DNA of 64,000 nucleotides from IMGVR_UViG_3300036770_006296:142618-206617; one strand, 5' to 3'. Shown: positions 3,606-64,000, counted from the first letter of the stretch. Made by a program: numbers and translations. The notes: generated by a model not told the origin, from the letters alone.

Positions 3606-3731
3606 AGTCAGGTGGCGGAATTGGTAGACGCATAAATAAAGGTTAACAGTAAGGATAACGTAGAGTAACCTTGAAATACCCATAAGTATAGCTCATAAGT
3701 TATCATACAGGTTCGAATCCTGTCCTGACTA
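3606..3731 (+). ncRNA. tRNA-like RNA with Leu-type acceptor/D/T arms and an expanded non-canonical anticodon region
   Basis: AGTCAGG/CCTGACT-A acceptor, GGCGGAATTGGTAGACGC D region, ACAGG-TTCGAAT-CCTGT T arm; ~75 nt insert with no canonical anticodon loop. Confidence 0.65.
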
Positions 3732-5424: not shown

Positions 5425-6031
5425 GATTTTTTTACCCGAGGATCTAATTGATATGGTTTCTAAACAAAGAGATTCTTTTTCTCATCTTATGGCTTTAAGA
5501 GATAAAGGAATGGAGCTCTACAAAAGATACGATTCTAGAGAAAAATTTAGGAGCGGTGTTTCTTGGCATGTTCCAACTCAATCTCTTGTAGATTTACTTA
5601 AATTACATTCTCCTTTAGTTTCTGTGGGAAGTGGATTTGCATACACAGAAAGTATAGCCAAAGAACAAGGGGCAGATATTATAGCAACGGATTTAAAACC
5701 GAACAAAGAAAATGCGTGGTGTAGAGATGGCGAGTTCTTTTGTGATGTCGAAGAAATAGATGCAGTTTCTGCAGTCAAGAAATATAAAGAACGGAATGTA
5801 TTTATGGCTTGGCCTCCTTATGATACAGACATGGCTTATAATGTAGCTTTAAATATGATGCCCGGATCAGTCTTGATATATGTCGGAGAAGGATGGGGAG
5901 GATGCAACGGAGACGACGAATTTTTCCAATATCTTAGCGATCAATTTGAGGAGATTGATGATCTAGCGATTCCTAAATGGTTCGGATTGAATGATTATTG
6001 TTCAGTTTATCGAAAAAAAGACAAAAAATAA
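5417..6031 (+). CDS. putative SAM-dependent methyltransferase-fold protein
   Basis: VSVGSGFAY motif-I-like, ATD, MAWPPY, YVGE..GGCNGD. Confidence 0.55.
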   Translation: MDKIFLPEDLIDMVSKQRDSFSHLMALRDKGMELYKRYDSREKFRSGVSWHVPTQSLVDLLKLHSPLVSVGSGFAYTESIAKEQGADIIATDLKPNKENAWCRDGEFFCDVEEIDAVSAVKKYKERNVFMAWPPYDTDMAYNVALNMMPGSVLIYVGEGWGGCNGDDEFFQYLSDQFEEIDDLAIPKWFGLNDYCSVYRKKDKK

Positions 6032-22274: not shown

Positions 22275-22320
22275 AATTTAGGTTTTTATTTTGGGATATA
22301 TAATGTAAAAATTATATCCC

Positions 22321-53987: not shown

Positions 53988-55613
53988 ATGTCAAAGTTGA
54001 GTAATTACGCAGATAAAAAAGTAGCAATGCAAATTGCACATAATTCACTCTATGGAGCTTTTGCAGTGGAGAACTTTATGGGAGGAACATCCTATGAGAT
54101 CAATCCATTAGACACATTAAGGATTGTAGCGGCTTCCTCTATATTCGGAGAACCCCAATATTACCGTGACGGTTTAAAAGCACCTAGTAATCTTAGCACT
54201 CTTTCTAGATACTCTATATTTTCCTCGATGTATAAATCGGATTTAACATCGGTTGAAATTTTCGAAAATGCGATAGACTCTGCCCTTGACTATGACTTTA
54301 AAGGTACCCTAGATCTTGCTTTAGAATTAAGAAATAAATTCTTCATGAGACTTAATCCTGCGGTTATCTTCATAAGAGCATCGCAGCACAGTAACAGAAC
54401 AGAGTTTAATGAAGCTAACCCTGGATACATGAAAAATGTGGGTAAGTCTATCTCACTTAGACCTGATGATTTAACAAATCAATTTGAGTACTATATGTAC
54501 AAGAATGGGGGTAAAAAAGGCCTTTCGTCTTTAGTTAAAAGAACATGGGCAGAAAAACTTGGTGAATTTAGCAGATATCAATTAAATAAGTACAAAGGAA
54601 AAAGACTAATAGATCTTGTACGTATATCTCACGCAAAAGGAGAGGACATTAATGAGTTAATGTCCACCGGTACATTAAAAGTAAAAGAGACCGAAAAAAC
54701 CTGGGAAACTCTAAGATCTGAAGGAAAAACATGGAAGGAAATAGCGGATACAATTCTTATCCCTCATATGGCTTTATTAAGAAACCTTAGAGGTATATTT
54801 ACTGAGGTAGAAGATCGTACAATCACAGCGAGAATCTTAACTCAATTAAAATCTGGGGTTGAAAGTGGAAAACAATTTCCGTTTAGATATTGGTCAGCTT
54901 TTAAGGCGGTACAAAATTCAGATATACATCACAAGCAACTCGTTCTTGATACTCTAGAGGAGTGCTTAGATATTTCGGTAGCTAATATGCCTAAATTAAA
55001 GGGGAAAACTGCCTGTCTATCCGATAACTCAGGATCAGCATGGGGTTCTTTCAATAGCGAATATGGATCGGTAACTGTTGCAGAAATAGCTAACCTTTCA
55101 TCATTGACAACTGCTTTACAATCCGATGAAGGTATTGTAGGAGTATTTGGCGATAATCTTTCATTAAAAGAAGTCTCTAAAAGAAACGGTATACTCACTC
55201 AATTAGAAGAGACCTCTGAAAGAGGAAGATCTCAAGGAGGTGGAACGGAAAATGGGATATGGGTATTCTGGGACGAAGCTATAAAAAATAAAGTCCATTA
55301 CGATAACGTTTTTATCTACTCGGATATGCAGGCTGGACACGGCGGACTATATGGCCACAGCAATACAGTAGGAAGTTCTCCTTATGGACATAGCGGTAAA
55401 GGTGATGTCCATGTAGATGTACTGGCAATGGTACAAGAATACAGAAGAACTGTTAATCCCAAGGTTAATGTTTTTACTGTTCAAGTTGCAGGATACAACA
55501 ACACGGTTTTACCCGAAAATCTTTATAGAGGTGCTATATTAGCCGGATGGACAGGAAAAGAGCCACTATTTGCTAAAGCCATAATCGAAGCTTGGGATTC
55601 TATAGAATCTTAA
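53988..55613 (+). CDS. TROVE/Ro60 ribonucleoprotein (TROVE + vWA)
   Basis: NFMGG.SY, YQLNKYK, DLVRISH, TWE, MALLRNLR, QFPFRY..A, vWA DNSGS...YSDMQ. Confidence 0.92.
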   Translation: MSKLSNYADKKVAMQIAHNSLYGAFAVENFMGGTSYEINPLDTLRIVAASSIFGEPQYYRDGLKAPSNLSTLSRYSIFSSMYKSDLTSVEIFENAIDSALDYDFKGTLDLALELRNKFFMRLNPAVIFIRASQHSNRTEFNEANPGYMKNVGKSISLRPDDLTNQFEYYMYKNGGKKGLSSLVKRTWAEKLGEFSRYQLNKYKGKRLIDLVRISHAKGEDINELMSTGTLKVKETEKTWETLRSEGKTWKEIADTILIPHMALLRNLRGIFTEVEDRTITARILTQLKSGVESGKQFPFRYWSAFKAVQNSDIHHKQLVLDTLEECLDISVANMPKLKGKTACLSDNSGSAWGSFNSEYGSVTVAEIANLSSLTTALQSDEGIVGVFGDNLSLKEVSKRNGILTQLEETSERGRSQGGGTENGIWVFWDEAIKNKVHYDNVFIYSDMQAGHGGLYGHSNTVGSSPYGHSGKGDVHVDVLAMVQEYRRTVNPKVNVFTVQVAGYNNTVLPENLYRGAILAGWTGKEPLFAKAIIEAWDSIES

Positions 55614-57935: not shown

Positions 57936-58001
57936 AATCATTTTTTTTATTAATAGAAATAGTCTATATTTGTGAAACAAAACAAAGGAAACAATATATA
58001 A
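57936..58001 (+). promoter_or_regulatory. stacked promoters of tRNA cluster 1
   Basis: AATCA-T8 (57936) + TATATTTG (57965); GAAAC (57974) + TATAA (57997); AATATATA. Confidence 0.65.
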
Positions 58002-58008
58002 TACTTAA

Positions 58009-58083
58009 ATGAACAAATTAATTAACATATTACCTTCCATATTAAGACCGTCGATAAGACGATCTCGAAAGGTCCTGTGTTAG
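58009..58083 (+). CDS. attenuator leader peptide 1 MNKLINILPSILRPSIRRSRKVLC
   Basis: 24 codons; codons 7-20 only Ile/Leu/Pro/Ser/Arg; 3' end complementary to terminator arm. Confidence 0.75.
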   Translation: MNKLINILPSILRPSIRRSRKVLC

Positions 58084-58104: not shown

Positions 58105-58138
58105 AAAAACCGGGACCTTTAAAAGTCCCGGTTTTTTT
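58105..58138 (+). terminator. attenuator terminator 1
   Basis: AAAAACCGGGAC-ctttaaaa-GTCCCGGTTTTTTT; 5' arm alternatively pairs with 58068-58077. Confidence 0.85.
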
Positions 58139-58140
58139 AT

Positions 58141-58153
58141 GTTCTTTGAAATA
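58141..58153 (+). promoter_or_regulatory. boxA-like antitermination site
   Basis: GTTCTTTGAAATA. Confidence 0.6.
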
Positions 58154-58156
58154 ATT

Positions 58157-58246
58157 GGAGAGGTGGCAGAGCCCGGTTTAATGCACCAGTCTTGAAAACT
58201 GACGTAGTGAAAGCTACCGGGGGTTCGAATCCCTCCCTCTCCGCCA
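58157..58246 (+). tRNA. tRNA-Ser(TGA)
   Basis: cloverleaf, long variable arm, CT-TGA-AA loop, encoded CCA. Confidence 0.95.
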
Positions 58247-58249
58247 TTT

Positions 58250-58323
58250 GGTCCGATAGCTCAGCTGGATAGAGCAACTGCCTTCTAAGCAGTAGGTCGC
58301 AGGTTCGAATCCTGCTCGGATCA
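58250..58323 (+). tRNA. tRNA-Arg(TCT)
   Basis: cloverleaf, CT-TCT-AA. Confidence 0.95.
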
Positions 58324-58329
58324 CTATAT

Positions 58330-58402
58330 CGGGATGTAGATCAGTTGGTAGATCGCCTGGTTTGGGACCGGGAGGTCCCAGGTTCGAGTCCTGATATCCC
58401 GA
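58330..58402 (+). tRNA. tRNA-Pro(TGG)
   Basis: cloverleaf, TT-TGG-GA. Confidence 0.93.
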
Positions 58403-58410
58403 CAGCTCTT

Positions 58411-58484
58411 AGAGGCGTAGCTCAATTGGTTAGAGCACATGCCTTATACGCATGCGGTCATGGGTTCGACTCCCATCGTCTCTA
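58411..58484 (+). tRNA. tRNA-Ile(TAT)
   Basis: CATGC-CT-TAT-AC-GCATG anticodon arm. Confidence 0.88.
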
Positions 58485-58488
58485 CTTA

Positions 58489-58562
58489 GGTCCCTTAGCT
58501 CAGTAGGTTAGAGCAACTGACTCATAATCAGTAGGTCCACGGTTCGAGCCCGTGAGGGACCA
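58489..58562 (+). tRNA. tRNA-Ile2(CAT) (lysidine type; elongator Met not excluded)
   Basis: GGTCCCTTAGCTCAG...CTCATAA; resembles ileX-type tRNAs. Confidence 0.85.
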
Positions 58563-58653
58563 CAAAGATACGGATGAGATTTCTAAATCTCCTACTTACT
58601 TATGAAAAGAAGGATTCCGTAACTAATACCATATAGTAGTGATGGTATTGCCT

Positions 58654-58737
58654 GCCCGGGTGATGGAATGGTAGACATGAGGGACTTAAAATCCCTTGGC
58701 CCTAAAGGCCGTGCGGGTTCGACTCCCGCCTCGGGTA
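58654..58737 (+). tRNA. tRNA-Leu(TAA)
   Basis: AGGGA-CT-TAA-AA-TCCCT, long variable arm. Confidence 0.95.
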
Positions 58738-58751
58738 CTGAATTAAAATAT

Positions 58752-59444
58752 ATGATAAAAGAATTAGAAGGATTTCAATGGGGCTGGATGGATCGGGGAA
58801 CAGATTCAGGAAACTACCACAAAGAAACCATGATAGGAGAAATATTCCTACAAAGAGCTTACGAAAGAATATTCGAAGTGGAACAAGGAGATATAGTTTT
58901 GGATGTCGGAGCTAGTGTAGGACCTTTTACAAGATCAATCTTAAGTAAAAACCCCAAACATGTTTTTTGTTTAGAGCCAAGTGTTTCTGAATTCAAATGC
59001 CTAGTTAAAAACACAATTGGATATCCAGTAACTCAAATAAACAAGGGAATTTGGGATTTTAATGGATCGGTAAATAGCGACCAACTATTCGGAGGGGAAG
59101 CACAAATGGAAACAATGACCTTTAGGACTTTCTTAGATCTTTTTGGTATTGATAGAATAGATTTTCTAAAAACTGATTGTGAAGGAGGTGAATATGAGAT
59201 ATTTAACTCAGAAAATCTGGATTTTATAAAATCAAATGTTCGTAAGGTGGTAGGTGAATGGCACTTGAGATCGCCAGGGAATAAAGATAAATTTAGAAAT
59301 TTCAGAGATACAGTTCTTCCATTATTTCAAAAGTACGAGGTTTATTCAATAGACGGGATTGATATAAAATGGGATCTATGGAATGAGCACTTCTTAGAAT
59401 ATTACGACGAGGTGATTCTTTATATAGATAACAGGAATATGTGA
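58752..59444 (+). CDS. FkbM family methyltransferase
   Basis: VLDVGASVG, LEP, IDFLKTDCEGGE; start moved out of tRNA-Leu. Confidence 0.85.
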   Translation: MIKELEGFQWGWMDRGTDSGNYHKETMIGEIFLQRAYERIFEVEQGDIVLDVGASVGPFTRSILSKNPKHVFCLEPSVSEFKCLVKNTIGYPVTQINKGIWDFNGSVNSDQLFGGEAQMETMTFRTFLDLFGIDRIDFLKTDCEGGEYEIFNSENLDFIKSNVRKVVGEWHLRSPGNKDKFRNFRDTVLPLFQKYEVYSIDGIDIKWDLWNEHFLEYYDEVILYIDNRNM

Positions 59445-59560
59445 CCTATAAAGGTGTAGAAACTATAACATGGACGGAAGAAAATGCAGATACTATTTGT
59501 AATTTTCTAAAACATAATAGACTTGTATCATTTTATGGATATATAGAATAAAGTCAAAAA

Positions 59561-60946
59561 ATGAGACCAAGCAGAGTACTAAACTTTGATAGTTATACCA
59601 AATTATTTGAGCAGGAGTCTTCTACACCAGTTAAAACAATCAGCGAGATAATATCTCTCTTTTTTAAATGTTACATGTTTGTAGCTACTAAAGCAGTAGA
59701 TTATAAAGATGTACTTGCCGATTTGATATCTGTATCAGAAGAAAAAGATCCAGCTAAAAGATCCGAAACAATGGAATCTGTTATTAAAAAAGTAGCAGAG
59801 AAAATAGATCCAAAATATGCTACAATAAAAGAAGATGCTATTAAAGCAGCAACTTCTATCAAAGAAATCTATGCTCAAGTTGCTTCAGCAGAAGATGCTA
59901 AAAAGAACGCAGATGCAATTAATAAAATGGTTACTAGTAAAATAGTAAACTATCAAGATATTCTTAAAAATGAGCCTTTAAAAGAGCACGCAAATGTATA
60001 TGGGTTTGATCAATATTCATTCCCTTTACTTTACGAGAAAAATACATTCGATGACGAAAGAGCAGCTCTTACAGATAAAATGAAATCTTTGTATTCTGAA
60101 ATGATTTCACAGAAAAAAAATCCTAGCAGTGCAACATTAAAAGCTAAAGCCGATGAGGTTGTATCTAAGTTTGATGAGTATCAAAAATTACTCTCTGATA
60201 AAGGGGCTTGGGAAAAAATGAAGAGGAAGGAAAGGAAGGAAAAATTAGAGACGATGAATGCTGAGATTGATGATATGATTCAAAAAGCCAATCAGCTTCA
60301 AAAATCTGAATTAGCCAAGATCGGGGTAGACAAGAAAATAGCAGATACTATGTCAAATATTATCACTAGTATAAATTCTATGTCTGATAAAGCTAAAGCT
60401 ATTGACGATAAAGCAATTGCTGACGCTAAGGATGCCGAAGAAAAAAAGAATCAAGAAAAGGTAGAGTATAAAGCTGGTGACATTGTTAAATATAAGAAGG
60501 ATAACGGTGAAGAAGCACAGAGCGAGATAGTTAAAATAGAGGGGGACAAAGTTTACTTTAAAGATAAGGACGGAAAAGAATTTTCTAAGGACAAAAAAGA
60601 CCTTACGGGAAAAGTAGAAGGGAAAGAAGAAGATAAAGACAAAGGTAAGGATATTAGCAGTGGTAATGTAGACAAGAAAAATCTAAAAAAAGATGGTCCT
60701 AATGTTGAAGCAATTAAGAAATTCCAAGAAGACTATAACAATTTAGGAATAGGAAAAAAATTAACGGCTGACGGATTATACGGAAAAAATACAGAAATCG
60801 CTGTTGATAAAGTTGCTAAGATGATTAAAAACATATCTGGAAAAGATATTAATACCGACGGAGGTAAAAAACTTACTGGAGATCTTCAGGATAATCTTAA
60901 AAAATTACTAGCTAATAAGGATAAGATTAAAGAAATCCTCGGATAA
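59561..60946 (+). CDS. late helical protein with C-terminal PG-binding-like motif
   Basis: GATATATA at 59538; FDSYTKLFEQE motif; LTADGLYGKNT. Confidence 0.6.
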   Translation: MRPSRVLNFDSYTKLFEQESSTPVKTISEIISLFFKCYMFVATKAVDYKDVLADLISVSEEKDPAKRSETMESVIKKVAEKIDPKYATIKEDAIKAATSIKEIYAQVASAEDAKKNADAINKMVTSKIVNYQDILKNEPLKEHANVYGFDQYSFPLLYEKNTFDDERAALTDKMKSLYSEMISQKKNPSSATLKAKADEVVSKFDEYQKLLSDKGAWEKMKRKERKEKLETMNAEIDDMIQKANQLQKSELAKIGVDKKIADTMSNIITSINSMSDKAKAIDDKAIADAKDAEEKKNQEKVEYKAGDIVKYKKDNGEEAQSEIVKIEGDKVYFKDKDGKEFSKDKKDLTGKVEGKEEDKDKGKDISSGNVDKKNLKKDGPNVEAIKKFQEDYNNLGIGKKLTADGLYGKNTEIAVDKVAKMIKNISGKDINTDGGKKLTGDLQDNLKKLLANKDKIKEILG

Positions 60947-60999
60947 AAAAATTAACAGTTCTAATACAATAGGAGCTGGAATTTTAAAAAAATGAAAAA

Positions 61000-61284
61000 A
61001 TGAAACATATATTCGAATTTGAATCATTCTCAGAAAAAGTAAATGAGGGATTCTGGAATTCTCTTTTTGGTGGACCAACAGTTGATGACGCAGCTCATGA
61101 TTCTATGAGAGGACAAGGATTTAGCCACAGAGGTAAAGATAAGGATGAACAAAACTACATCGTGTTCCAAGGACAAAAATTCTATCCTGATCAAATTCAA
61201 TATGATGATGTTTATTCAACTAAACCTATCCCAAGAATAGAAAATGGAATTCTTATAGTTGCTAATCCGGCTTGGAATTTATAA
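61000..61284 (+). CDS. hypothetical protein (MKHIFEFESFSEKVNE)
   Basis: N-terminal motif. Confidence 0.65.
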   Translation: MKHIFEFESFSEKVNEGFWNSLFGGPTVDDAAHDSMRGQGFSHRGKDKDEQNYIVFQGQKFYPDQIQYDDVYSTKPIPRIENGILIVANPAWNL

Positions 61285-61295
61285 AAAAAATCAAA

Positions 61296-61345
61296 AATCA
61301 TTTTTTTTATTGGAAACTTTTAGCTACTTTTGAGGTATATAAATA
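61296..61345 (+). promoter_or_regulatory. stacked promoters of tRNA cluster 2
   Basis: AATCA-T8 (61296) + TACTTTTG (61325); GAAAC (61313); GTATATAAATA. Confidence 0.6.
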
Positions 61346-61362
61346 AAAGAACAAAAAATTCA

Positions 61363-61437
61363 ATGCAACAATTTCTAAATATCGTACAAGTTCAGCTCGA
61401 TCTTCTTGAGGATATTGGAAAGTGTCAGAGGAATTAA
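61363..61437 (+). CDS. attenuator leader peptide 2 MQQFLNIVQVQLDLLEDIGKCQRN
   Basis: 24 codons; CTC GAT CTT CTT GAG GAT run; 3' end complementary to terminator arm. Confidence 0.7.
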   Translation: MQQFLNIVQVQLDLLEDIGKCQRN

Positions 61438-61457
61438 TTGATATAACGATACAATTT

Positions 61458-61486
61458 AAACCTCTGATAACCTCAGAGGTTTTTTT
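61458..61486 (+). terminator. attenuator terminator 2
   Basis: AAACCTCTGA-taacc-TCAGAGGTTTTTTT; 5' arm alternatively pairs with 61423-61431. Confidence 0.85.
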
Positions 61487-61495
61487 GTTTTATAT

Positions 61496-61508
61496 GGTCT
61501 TTGAAATA
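61496..61508 (+). promoter_or_regulatory. boxA-like site
   Basis: GGTCTTTGAAATA. Confidence 0.55.
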
Positions 61509-61516
61509 TTGAAATT

Positions 61517-61601
61517 AGGAATAAGGTAACCACAAACCCACTGGTATTAGGCAGCTCTTGAGATGGAATGCAAGACAGAGCGTAGGTCCTGCCTTATTCC
61601 T
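61517..61601 (+). ncRNA. unclassified structured RNA heading tRNA cluster 2
   Basis: 12-bp terminal stem AGGAATAAGGTA/TGCCTTATTCCT enclosing two hairpins. Confidence 0.5.
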
Positions 61602-61608
61602 TTTTTAT

Positions 61609-61680
61609 GGTCGGTTCATCTAGGGGTCAGGATACAAGGTTTTCATCCTTGTCACACGGGTTCGAATCCCGTACCGACTA
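61609..61680 (+). tRNA. tRNA-Glu(TTC)
   Basis: CAAGG-TT-TTC-AT-CCTTG. Confidence 0.93.
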
Positions 61681-61766
61681 CTACAGCCTGTACCCTTGAG
61701 AAACTCGTATTTAAAGATAAGCAGGTTGGTTACGAAATAAAAGGGTAAGAGAATAAGTAACAAATT

Positions 61767-61840
61767 GGTCCTACAGTCCAGTTGGAGTGGACGCCGCCCT
61801 GTCACGGCGGAGATCGCGGGTTCGAGTCCCGCTAGGACCG
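61767..61840 (+). tRNA. tRNA-Asp(GTC)
   Basis: CCGCC-CT-GTC-AC-GGCGG. Confidence 0.93.
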
Positions 61841-61846
61841 CAATAT

Positions 61847-61919
<73 letters not shown>

Positions 61920-61990
61920 CTAAGCCCCCATTTCGTACCGTTACTGGATAATATAAATCTAAGTAACGTACGAAATGGAAATAATTTAAA

Positions 61991-62003
61991 GTTCTTTGAT
62001 ATA
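61991..62003 (+). promoter_or_regulatory. boxA-like site within cluster 2
   Basis: GTTCTTTGATATA after long hairpin 61928-61978. Confidence 0.5.
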
Positions 62004-62067
62004 CTTTATTACATCAATTTCAGATTTGGTAGTCTTTCTTGGATATATATACTAAAACGATTGTTTT

Positions 62068-62523
62068 ATGTATAGCAAAAATAAAATATCAGATATAATG
62101 ATAATAGAGGAGATAAAAACAGGAAATACGATGAATACCTGCGCTATTAATCTAGGTATTAAATTTTCGACGTTTAAAAGAAGAGCAATTTTACTTGGTG
62201 TTTATACTCCAAATCAAGGAAGAAAAGGAATTAAAAGAAATCCTAGTGAATTTAATAAAATTACAATATCTTTAGACGATATAATATCGGGGAAACATGA
62301 AGGACATTATACATCTTCAAGATTAAGAAAAAGATTAATTAAAGAAGGATATAAGAAAAATCAATGTGAAGAATGTAATATAAAAGAATGGAACGGGAAA
62401 GAGATAACATGTGAGCTACATCACATTGACGGAAATAGGGGTAATAACAGGTTGGAAAATTTATTAATACTCTGCCCTAATTGTCACTCTCAAACCCCTA
62501 ACCACTCAAAAAGAAATACCTAG
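62068..62523 (+). mobile_element. HNH endonuclease inserted in tRNA cluster
   Basis: CEEC...ELHHIDGNRGNNRLENLLILCPNCH; GATATATA at 62042. Confidence 0.88.
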
Positions 62524-62591
62524 GTACCCCAATTGGCAGAGGGAATAGATTTAGGATCTATAAAGTGAGGGTTCGAGTCCCTCCCTGGGTA
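62518..62591 (+). tRNA. tRNA-Leu(TAG) with short variable loop
   Basis: ACCTAGG/CCTGGGT-A, ATAGA-TT-TAG-GA-TCTAT, 5-nt variable loop. Confidence 0.85.
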
Positions 62592-62599
62592 CACCAAAA

Positions 62600-62673
62600 G
62601 GTCCCTTAGCTCAGTAGGTTAGAGCAACTGACTCATAATCAGTAGGTCCACGGTTCGAGCCCGTGAGGGACCA
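62600..62673 (+). tRNA. tRNA-Ile2(CAT), identical copy of 58489-58562
   Basis: exact duplicate sequence. Confidence 0.85.
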
Positions 62674-62674
62674 C

Positions 62675-63193
62675 ATGAAAGTTTTATTTTTAGATCATGA
62701 TGGAGTAATTTGTCTTTCTTCACAATGGGGAGGGAGATACAAGAAGAAAGGATACGATAGTAATCCCGAAACTCCGCTGGATCTTAGAATGGACAGCTTT
62801 GATAAAAAGGCGGTTAAGGTTCTAAACGAGATTATAGAATTAACTGGATGCGAAATCGTTGTTTCTTCAGATTGGAAAAACTGGGGAGATTTAGAACAGA
62901 TGCAAAAAATGTATATTACTCGGGGGATCAAACCTCCTATCGATCTTACTCCTAACATGAAAGATTTCGACGAGAATGGATTTGCTCTTTTTGAATGGAA
63001 AGAGTTATATGGAGCTATACGTGTTACAGAAATTAGGGAATGGCTTAAAAATCACCCAGAAGTAACACATTGGGTTGCTGTTGATGATATGGATCTTTCT
63101 AAGTTAGATAACTTTGTAATGACTACTAAACCTTACAATGAGGGGATAAAACAATCAGGAATTAAGGATAAAATCGTTAAATTTTTGATTTAA
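62675..63193 (+). CDS. HAD-superfamily protein (Swiss-army-knife RNA-repair HAD-like)
   Basis: VLFLDHDGV, IVVSSDW, EI.EWL..HP, WVAVDD; start moved out of tRNA. Confidence 0.75.
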   Translation: MKVLFLDHDGVICLSSQWGGRYKKKGYDSNPETPLDLRMDSFDKKAVKVLNEIIELTGCEIVVSSDWKNWGDLEQMQKMYITRGIKPPIDLTPNMKDFDENGFALFEWKELYGAIRVTEIREWLKNHPEVTHWVAVDDMDLSKLDNFVMTTKPYNEGIKQSGIKDKIVKFLI

Positions 63194-63278
63194 TTAATAA
63201 AATCTTTTTTTAGGGCCGTTATATTTCGCTAATTTTGTGATATAATGTATGTATAAGTTTAACATTAAAAATTTTATT

Positions 63279-63671
63279 ATGGAAAAACAAATTTTAAAAA
63301 GATTTACTATGAATGTGGATCACACAAACCCAGATGCTAAGATGTCATTCACTACTGTTGGTACTGGTAAAACAGAAAGGGAAGCAGCAGTATTTGCTCT
63401 TGGTATGTTTTATAAAATCATGGATGGTGACGAGGGTGACCAAGGAATTCAAAGATATGAGGATGCTTTGGAAATTGTTAATGAGAAATTGGAGGAAGTG
63501 GAAATTGATCAGGTGATAGACTCTTTAATAATGGGAGAGGTAGAAAAAGATTCAGATATTTTCTATAATGCTTATGAGTCCACTAAAGTTGAATATAGCT
63601 GGAGCGAGGTTAAAGAAGTGTCGGAGTGTGGATATACGGCCAGTATGGAAGTAATCGAAACTTATTACTAA
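63279..63671 (+). CDS. hypothetical acidic protein
   Basis: class I promoter 63201-63237. Confidence 0.6.
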   Translation: MEKQILKRFTMNVDHTNPDAKMSFTTVGTGKTEREAAVFALGMFYKIMDGDEGDQGIQRYEDALEIVNEKLEEVEIDQVIDSLIMGEVEKDSDIFYNAYESTKVEYSWSEVKEVSECGYTASMEVIETYY

Positions 63672-63689
63672 TTAATCCAAAAATATCAG

Positions 63690-63755
63690 AAACCATTTTT
63701 TATTCAAAATAATTGTTATACTTTTGTGAAACAGTATCGGAATAAAGATATATAA
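63690..63755 (+). promoter_or_regulatory. stacked promoters of tRNA cluster 3
   Basis: AAACCA-T6 + TACTTTTG (63719); GAAAC (63728) + TATAA (63751); GATATATA (63747). Confidence 0.65.
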
Positions 63756-63765
63756 GAAAGAAACA

Positions 63766-63873
63766 ATGAAAAACTGTAGTAAACATAACATCATTCGCAT
63801 GAACAGTCAGATTAATGGCTGCTATCAAACGGTGGCGTTTTGGGCTAAGGGGAAAGAACCCGATCGGAGCTAG
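63766..63873 (+). CDS. attenuator leader peptide 3 MKNCSKHNIIRMNSQINGCYQTVAFWAKGKEPDRS
   Basis: 35 codons, 19 amino acids, no Leu; 3' end complementary to terminator arm. Confidence 0.72.
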   Translation: MKNCSKHNIIRMNSQINGCYQTVAFWAKGKEPDRS

Positions 63874-63902
63874 ATACAGGAAATCATAAATAGATATTTT
63901 GG

Positions 63903-63932
63903 AAAAGGCTTCGATTATTCGAAGCCTTTTTT
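63903..63932 (+). terminator. attenuator terminator 3
   Basis: AAAAGGCTTCGA-ttat-TCGAAGCCTTTTTT; 5' arm alternatively pairs with 63862-63871. Confidence 0.85.
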
Positions 63933-63936
63933 ATTT

Positions 63937-63949
63937 GTTCTTTGACATA
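63937..63949 (+). promoter_or_regulatory. boxA-like site
   Basis: GTTCTTTGACATA. Confidence 0.6.
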
Positions 63950-63959
63950 CTGGAAAATT

Positions 63960-64000
63960 GGGTTGGTAGCAAAGTTGGTCAATGCACTAGACTGAAAATC
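63960..64000 (+). tRNA. tRNA-Phe(GAA), truncated by window end
   Basis: GGGTTGG TA GCAAAGTTGGTCAATGC A CTAGA-CT-GAA-AA-TC. Confidence 0.75.

Follow-up and report, generated by a model that had tools for sequence, protein, structure and literature searches.

Candidate codon-sampling leaders, with features of transcription attenuators, in front of the tRNA gene blocks of a large freshwater phage

In a large freshwater phage, each block of tRNA genes is preceded by a short open reading frame (ORF) and a predicted transcription terminator, and the codons found in each of these ORFs correspond to those read by the tRNAs located behind it. This arrangement looks like a previously undescribed feedback switch on tRNA supply, in which the short ORFs would act as ribosome-mediated attenuators, although all the evidence is computational, and the arrangement has not been tested experimentally. 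The window analyzed here is the whole stretch of 64,000 nucleotides of IMGVR_UViG_3300036770_006296:142618-206617, which forms the last 64 kb of a metagenomic viral contig of 206,617 bp, is AT-rich (33% GC), and encodes a Dda-like helicase, a thymidylate synthase, a TROVE/Ro60-like protein, and many tRNAs.

The leader ORF and the tRNA array behind it

The leader in front of the third tRNA cluster is found on the plus strand at 63766-63873, with the ATG at 63766, a TAG stop at 63871-63873, and 35 sense codons that encode the peptide MKNCSKHNIIRMNSQINGCYQTVAFWAKGKEPDRS. This peptide contains 19 different amino acids and no Leu, while Glu (GAA), Pro (CCC), and Asp (GAT) occur only at codons 31-33, Ser is encoded by AGT, AGT, and AGC, Ile by ATC, ATT, and ATT, Arg by CGC and CGG, and Phe by TTT. 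A terminator-like hairpin follows at 63900-63933, together with the first 41 nt of a tRNA with the anticodon GAA at 63960-64000, which was recovered as a truncated hit to the Rfam tRNA model. Everything that the first-pass annotation had described from the sequence alone, i.e., the amino acid content of the leader, its choice of Ser, Ile, and Arg codons, and the Phe tRNA that follows, was confirmed.

The first-pass annotation had also predicted that the array beyond position 64000 would contain tRNAs for Lys, Asn, Cys, Ser(GCT), His, Ile(GAT), Arg(ACG), Met, Gln, Gly, Tyr, Thr, Val, Ala, Phe, and Trp. The source contig ends at 64000, and no overlap with its own start, which might have indicated a circular genome, was found, but two other assemblies cover the junction. 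One of these contigs, L047, is 99.96% identical to the window over 58479-64000 (2 mismatches in 5,522 nt) and runs 5.7 kb further, while the other, L027, is 99.7% identical over 62675-64000. In L047, the array is composed of Phe(GAA), Lys(TTT), Trp(CCA), Arg(ACG), Cys(GCA), Ser(GCT), Ile(GAT), Thr(TGT), and Gln(TTG), followed by an HNH endonuclease gene and an IMPDH-like gene, and the full tRNA-Phe gene, at 5482-5555, maps to 63960-64033 of the window. A small array, or one dominated by Leu, Asp, Glu, or Pro tRNAs and lacking the predicted isoacceptors, had been named in advance as the outcome that would overturn this prediction, and neither condition was observed when the anticodons of L047 were compared with the leader codons, given that all nine tRNAs are on the predicted list, and there is no Leu, Asp, Glu, or Pro tRNA. 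Taken literally, however, seven of the 16 predicted tRNAs (Val, Asn, Tyr, Gly, Ala, Met, and His) are absent from this strain, in which a deletion removes everything between Ile(GAT) and Thr. These seven lie between Ile(GAT) and Thr in the related phages L001, L004, L020/L036, and L042, whose arrays are exactly the predicted 16, and none of the relatives has a Leu, Asp, Glu, or Pro tRNA in cluster 3. The interpretation offered by the first-pass annotation is thus supported in part.

The predicted Ser(GCT) gene is not called by ARAGORN, although a gene of 87-89 nt, with the anticodon loop CUGCUAA and a long variable arm, lies between Cys and Ile(GAT) in every related array, including L047 (6219-6307) and L042 (7200-7286), where it scores 38 bits (E=2e-6) on the Rfam tRNA-Sec model. 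While this score lies below the Rfam gathering threshold, the gene is conserved, with paired, compensatory changes in the variable and T arms, and it is a class II tRNA-Ser(GCU). When this gene is counted, cluster 3 varies widely in size between close strains, with 16, 13, 9, 7, 5 (in L006), 1, or 0 tRNAs, and HNH endonuclease genes are found inside and next to the tRNA blocks, such as at 62068-62523 in the window, at 6584-7072 in L047, and in the arrays of L027/L047, L002, L035/L040, L006, L028, and L032. A further tRNA-like gene that ARAGORN does not call (Rfam tRNA, 40.6 bits) lies at 3606-3731 (plus strand) of the window, with a 64-nt insertion where the anticodon arm should be, and may be an intron-containing or disrupted tRNA. 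The TROVE (Ro60-like) domain is found in a 541-aa protein (53988-55613, plus strand), which also matches the PHROG family "RNA-binding protein" and lies 2.5 kb upstream of the tRNA region, and a phage Ro60 homologue next to tRNA arrays suggests that a Y-RNA-like partner may be encoded nearby.

The correspondence between the leader and the array was evaluated under the codon usage of the phage itself. The probability of 19 or more amino acids in 35 codons is 0.013, and that of no Leu, Glu, Asp, or Pro in the first 30 codons is 1.6e-4. All the codons from 1 to 30 (63766-63855) are readable by the 16 cluster-3 tRNAs (p about 4e-7 for the 29 codons that follow the ATG), and all 16 tRNA families are also represented (conditional p=1.4e-3), which gives a joint probability of about 5e-10. 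These statistics were chosen after the pattern had been seen, and should be treated as orders of magnitude, although the margin is large and the pattern is repeated in the two sister units. Among the 243 ATG-initiated ORFs of 30 or more codons in the six frames of the window, only this one reaches 30 of 30 codons and 16 families, while the next best has 25 of 30 codons and 12 families. No collinearity was found between the order of the codons in the leader and the order of the tRNAs in the array.

Three units with alternative RNA pairings

The same cassette precedes each of the tRNA blocks, in the order of an A/T tract, TTTGTGAAAC, ATATATAA, a short ORF, a terminator, the motif G[GT]TCTTTGA[AC]ATA, and the tRNAs. 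In unit 3, the promoter-like region (63694-63755, plus strand) contains the A/T tract CATTTTTTATT (63694-63704), TTTGTGAAAC (63723-63732), and ATATATAA (63748-63755), which would give a 5' UTR of about 0-10 nt. The same three elements precede unit 1 in the same order (57937-58001), exact copies of TTTGTGAAAC occur only at these two units in the window, and the elements are conserved in the relatives, although their function as a promoter is inferred.

The sister leader ORF 1 (58009-58083, plus strand; MNKLINILPSILRPSIRRSRKVLC) has its antiterminator at 58069-58082 and its terminator at 58105-58136, and is followed by cluster 1 (58157-58738), which is composed of Ser(TGA), Arg(TCT), Pro(TGG), Ile(TAT), Met, and Leu(TAA). 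Of its codons, 13 of 23 are cluster-1 codons, against a background share of 0.23, and codons 7-17 are 11 consecutive codons readable by the cluster-1 tRNAs (ATA, TTA, CCN, TCN, and AGA; p about 1e-6). The sister leader ORF 2 (61363-61437, plus strand; MQQFLNIVQVQLDLLEDIGKCQRN) has its antiterminator at 61423-61432 and its terminator at 61458-61482, and is followed by cluster 2, with Glu, Asp, and Met at 61609-61920 and Leu(TAG) and Met at 62518-62674. This leader contains the run of six cluster-2 codons CTC GAT CTT CTT GAG GAT (p about 1.5e-3). An insert of about 110 nt (61497-61608) lies between the terminator of unit 2 and tRNA-Glu, and ends in a second long hairpin with a U-tract, although its fold is not better than that of shuffled sequences (z = -0.3). 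It is present in the window, in L001, and in L028, but absent at this site in L019, L037, and L042, with a related copy elsewhere in L042 (3743-3832).

The terminator of unit 3 (63903-63932) has a 12-bp stem, a 4-nt loop, and a U-tract, and its 5' arm (63907-63916) can pair with an antiterminator strand (63862-63871) that is formed by the last sense codons and the first base of the stop codon of the ORF. When the transcript of each unit was folded with the 3' arm of the terminator withheld, the minimum-energy structure paired the 5' arm with the last codons of the ORF, with a gain of 16-18 kcal/mol, which is a 10-bp helix in unit 3, whereas declaring the footprint of a ribosome at the stop codon to be unpaired removed this helix and left the terminator free to form. 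In comparison with 2,000 dinucleotide shuffles of the upstream sequence, the duplexes are significant in the three units (p=0.0005, 0.003, and 0.008), with an energy of -14.3 kcal/mol in unit 3 against -8.7±1.8 in the shuffles (p=0.008), and the best site lies at the stop codon in all three units (58069-58082, 61423-61432, and 63861-63872). The codons that overlap the antiterminator are those that do not belong to the downstream cluster (Glu, Pro, and Asp in leader 3), as expected, given that a ribosome stalled there could not free the strand.

Across 15 variants, 99.4% of the cells of the terminator are paired, and one pair is compensatory (CG in eight sequences and UA in seven). In the case of the antiterminator, 98.7% of the cells are paired, although only one-sided changes, tolerated as G·U, were observed, with no compensatory pair, and the analysis of covariation was uninformative because the sequences are too conserved. 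A 1:2 (anti-antiterminator) helix or pause hairpin, which would ensure termination in the absence of translation, was also sought. In unit 1, the minimum-energy fold pairs codons 4-10 with the antiterminator region, and a small hairpin (CGUC/GACG) is conserved, whereas only weak pairings of the 5' end appear in unit 3, where no clear helix of this type was found, none of these pairings is supported by covariation, and the evidence points neither way on this component. In the region 63650-64000, no hit to an Rfam family reached the gathering score, with the exception of the fragment of the tRNA-Phe gene, and the sub-threshold hits (Phe_leader, with 26 bits against a cutoff of 55, STnc230, and rimP) align only the terminator hairpin, so that neither the T-box riboswitch nor any other curated leader family is matched.

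A conserved motif, GTTCTTTGACATA, lies at 63937-63949, between the terminator and the first tRNA of cluster 3, and exact or near-exact copies follow all three terminators (58141-58153 and 61496-61508 in the other two units), with one more at 61992 (61991-62003). In the extended form G[GT]TCTTTGA[AC]ATA(TTGG), this motif lies 9-19 nt 5' of tRNA genes, follows the terminators but also occurs between adjacent tRNAs, and is shared by distant tRNA-rich phages. Its role is unknown, and it may be either a phage-specific promoter or an RNA-processing signal, which leaves undecided whether the tRNAs depend on the promoter upstream of the leader; if it is a promoter, the attenuator would at most modulate expression. 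On the other hand, a sigma-70 -35 box is an unlikely identity for this motif, given that a -10 element at the right spacing from its TTGACA would lie inside the tRNA, although a different kind of promoter is not excluded.

Conservation in related and distant phages

A total of 18 distinct variants of unit 3 were collected from IMG/VR and JGI metagenomes. INPHARED contains no close relative, with only the tRNAs matching, and a distant blastn search with the unit found nothing. The ORF is kept in all 18 variants, and in every phage that keeps an array, it differs at only 1-6 of its 108 positions, while the promoter region differs by 5-28% and the spacer/terminator region by 5-15%, and the flanking protein, p140 (63249-63671), is only 41-90% identical. 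The ORF is thus the most conserved part of the unit in these phages, where its substitutions are 7 synonymous, 6 non-synonymous, and 1 nonsense, and both the synonymous and the non-synonymous changes stay within the decoding set. For example, one lineage swaps Ile10 to Asn and Asn13 to Ile, which preserves the composition, while one variant (L033) has a stop two codons early, which is still next to the antiterminator. The synonymous sites in the GC-rich 3' half are almost invariant, however, which suggests additional constraints at the RNA level that were not resolved here.

The sister leaders behave in a similar way. In leader 1, positions 8, 10, 11, and 16 exchange Leu-TTA, Ile-ATA, and Ser-TCN freely, and 22 of the 25 codon states in codons 7-19 remain in the cluster-1 set, while the indels found in leader 2 are of 3 and 12 nt, so that the frame is kept. 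In one relative, L006 (2570-2650), the start codon of leader 1 is ATA, in a phage that has also lost tRNA-Ser, Pro, Met, and Leu from cluster 1, and this may represent the decay of the unit following the shrinkage of the array.

The most telling case is that of L032, whose p140 is a close relative (82% identity), but whose array has been deleted down to a 27-nt stub of tRNA-Phe. The ORF of L032 is still open and has an in-frame 3-nt deletion, but presents 29 differences in 108 nt, while its promoter and terminator diverge normally, and the constraint on the ORF therefore depends on the presence of the tRNAs. On short time scales, however, the leader and the array do not co-vary, given that the strains that lost seven or more tRNAs (this phage, L027, L002, and L035) keep the leader unchanged.

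The context of the start codons also matches that of the real genes of this phage, which lack Shine-Dalgarno sequences (2 of 61) and have A-rich upstream regions, often with GATATATAA 5-20 nt before the ATG. Many genes (e.g., at 22296, 24068, 31127, 40300, and 56291) have (G)ATATATAA 5-20 nt before the ATG, which is probably a phage promoter element. Together with the best named relatives of the helicase, which are Flavobacterium and crAss-like phages, this suggests a Bacteroidota host, although this is an inference. Public RNA runs contained only about 5% of the sampled words, and the contigs obtained from them were mostly tRNA-like pieces of other organisms. One 196-nt contig spans 63757-63948 exactly, but it comes from a run flagged as probably DNA, and its ends coincide with the edges of the conserved block, so it is not evidence of a transcript; no ribosome profiling data were available, neither the translation of the leader nor the response of read-through to charged tRNA was measured, and nothing here shows transcription, translation, or regulated termination.

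A scan for the post-terminator motif found at least five distant contigs of tRNA-rich phages (L054, L088, L102, L155, and L159), each with an unrelated short ORF, a terminator, the motif, and then tRNAs. The codon matches are modest (p=0.4, 0.03, 0.09, 0.014, and 0.011, respectively), which is supportive, but does not constitute a systematic survey. In L088, the leader covers 14 of the 14 downstream amino acids (p=0.002), while six Asp codons precede two tRNA-Asp genes in L159, and four TTR codons precede tRNA-Leu(TAA) in L155.

Attenuation as the favored reading and its implications

The reading that best accounts for these data, with a probability of roughly 0.7, is that unit 3 (63694-63949) is one of three paralogous leader-peptide transcription attenuators, each located in front of a block of phage tRNA genes. 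In this view, a promoter a few nucleotides upstream would give a nearly leaderless transcript, and a ribosome would translate the 35-codon ORF close behind the RNA polymerase. If every codon family is decoded promptly, the ribosome would reach the stop codon and cover 63862-63871, which would allow the terminator hairpin (63903-63930) to form, and transcription would stop before tRNA-Phe. If, on the other hand, any of the 16 sampled tRNAs is scarce or uncharged, the ribosome would stall within codons 2-30, and the antiterminator strand would stay free to pair with the 5' arm of the terminator, so that the polymerase would read through into the array, and the new tRNAs, once processed and charged, would shut the switch again. 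This would be a negative feedback on tRNA supply, with leader 3 acting as an "any of 16" sensor, and leaders 1 and 2 sensing the codon sets of their own clusters, although one codon per tRNA gives less stalling leverage than the codon runs of the classical leaders. The architecture satisfies the in-silico criteria for a ribosome-mediated attenuator in having a short leader ORF that is maintained in relatives, codons that correspond to the genes behind it, an intrinsic terminator between the ORF and these genes, and a mutually exclusive antiterminator whose upstream strand would be occluded by a ribosome at the stop codon. The anatomy of the units, the correspondence between codons and tRNAs, the alternative pairings, and the pattern of conservation are demonstrated by the sequences analyzed, whereas the promoter, the translation of the ORF, the coupling of transcription to translation, and the direction of the regulation are inferred from them.

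Other explanations are less probable. Each cassette may be a stand-alone small gene that produces a micropeptide or a small RNA, with the tRNA blocks being transcribed independently from the GTTCTTTGA(A/C)ATA element just downstream, in which case the terminators would act as insulators rather than switches. This is unlikely, although the position of the motif behind every terminator, its occurrence between tRNAs without any terminator in L054 and L155, its conservation in distant phages, and the unchanged leader of the strains with reduced arrays all favor it. However, it does not explain why the codons of each ORF match the tRNAs behind it, why the end of each ORF is complementary to the 5' arm of the terminator, why the peptide sequence drifts while membership of the codon set is kept, or why the ORF diverged only where the array was deleted.

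A structured non-coding RNA, such as a riboswitch-like or tRNA-binding leader, a processing platform, or a partner of the Ro60-like protein, in which the ORF would be incidental, is more doubtful still. This possibility draws on the extreme nucleotide conservation, which includes third codon positions, the GC-rich 3' half in a genome of 33% GC, the fold z-score of -4.3, and the nearby TROVE/Ro60-like gene. The absence of an Rfam match, the frame kept through indels of 3 and 12 nt and through 29 substitutions in L032, the synonymous nature of about half of the changes, the lack of covariation inside the ORF, and the fact that the three units share their architecture but not their sequence, apart from the codon logic, all weigh against this explanation. 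Finally, short ORFs are common in AT-rich DNA, and many genes end with terminators, but a chance ORF next to an ordinary terminator of p140 is very unlikely, given the joint probability of the codon pattern, the three parallel cases, and the greater conservation of the ORF in comparison with the neighboring protein genes.

The closest known systems are the ribosome-mediated attenuators of the amino-acid operons (trpL, hisL, pheL, leuL, thrL, and ilvL) and of pheST (pheM) in Proteobacteria, in which a short leader ORF carries codons tied to the regulated product and is followed by an intrinsic terminator, with an alternative antiterminator that is masked by a ribosome that reaches the stop codon. 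In these systems, thrL and ilvL already sample two or three amino acids, and pheM regulates a component of the translation machinery. In the present case, the regulated genes would be tRNAs, rather than enzymes or synthetases, so that the sensed molecule would be the product itself, and leader 3 samples 16 codon families, mostly once or twice each, rather than using runs of one codon. The element is also found in a phage, with near-leaderless mRNAs that lack Shine-Dalgarno sequences, and has no sequence or Rfam similarity to these leaders. The leaderless polycysteine short ORFs that act as attenuators in mycobacteria (bioRxiv 10.1101/834739) also make downstream expression depend on the supply of an aminoacyl-tRNA through the codon content of a leaderless or near-leaderless short ORF, but sense one amino acid (Cys), lie upstream of protein genes, and belong to the host, whereas many codons would be sensed here, the downstream genes are tRNAs, and an explicit terminator/antiterminator pair is present. 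The T-box riboswitches also sense tRNA status through codon-anticodon recognition and switch between a terminator and an antiterminator, but bind one uncharged tRNA directly, without a ribosome, have a conserved T-box sequence and specifier loop, nothing of which was detected here, and control synthetase, biosynthesis, and transporter genes.

The tRNA gene clusters of other phages (T4, cyanophages, vibriophages, and mycobacteriophages) are also dense arrays interspersed with homing-endonuclease genes, with contents that vary between strains, and the T4 cluster includes small stable RNAs of unknown function. The literature searches found no report of leader ORFs or attenuators in front of such arrays, and no leader-peptide attenuator in front of tRNA genes. 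A Phe-rich leader of the E. coli tRNA-Phe genes was considered as a possible precedent, but the region upstream of pheV in K-12 shows no such ORF or terminator, and this precedent was discarded. Leader-peptide attenuation is a textbook mechanism, known for amino-acid biosynthesis operons and a few synthetase genes, while the kind of target and the sensing logic would be new here, and in the literature searched, attenuation of this type has not been described for tRNA genes, for phages, or with a leader that samples sixteen codon families one-to-one.

A broader hypothesis, which is only somewhat more likely than not, is that tRNA-rich phages carry translational codon samplers, i.e., short, near-leaderless ORFs that poll the decoding capacity of the infected cell, one codon family per phage tRNA, and open the transcription of the matching tRNA block only when a polled tRNA is limiting. 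This would be a self-regulating tRNA homeostat, which could also act as a sensor of the depletion or cleavage of host tRNAs, for example by anticodon nucleases, and it may be widespread among the phages of hosts that do not use Shine-Dalgarno sequences, since distant phages show the same architecture with different ORFs.

If the attenuator reading is real, phages would regulate their tRNA supply by feedback rather than expressing it constitutively, and the content of a tRNA array could be read from a leader of 100 nt, as was done successfully in the first-pass annotation. The leader would also provide a compact natural part for sensing decoding capacity, and would give a direct way to test why phages carry tRNAs, whether for the compensation of codon usage or for the replacement of host tRNAs that are degraded or cleaved during infection.
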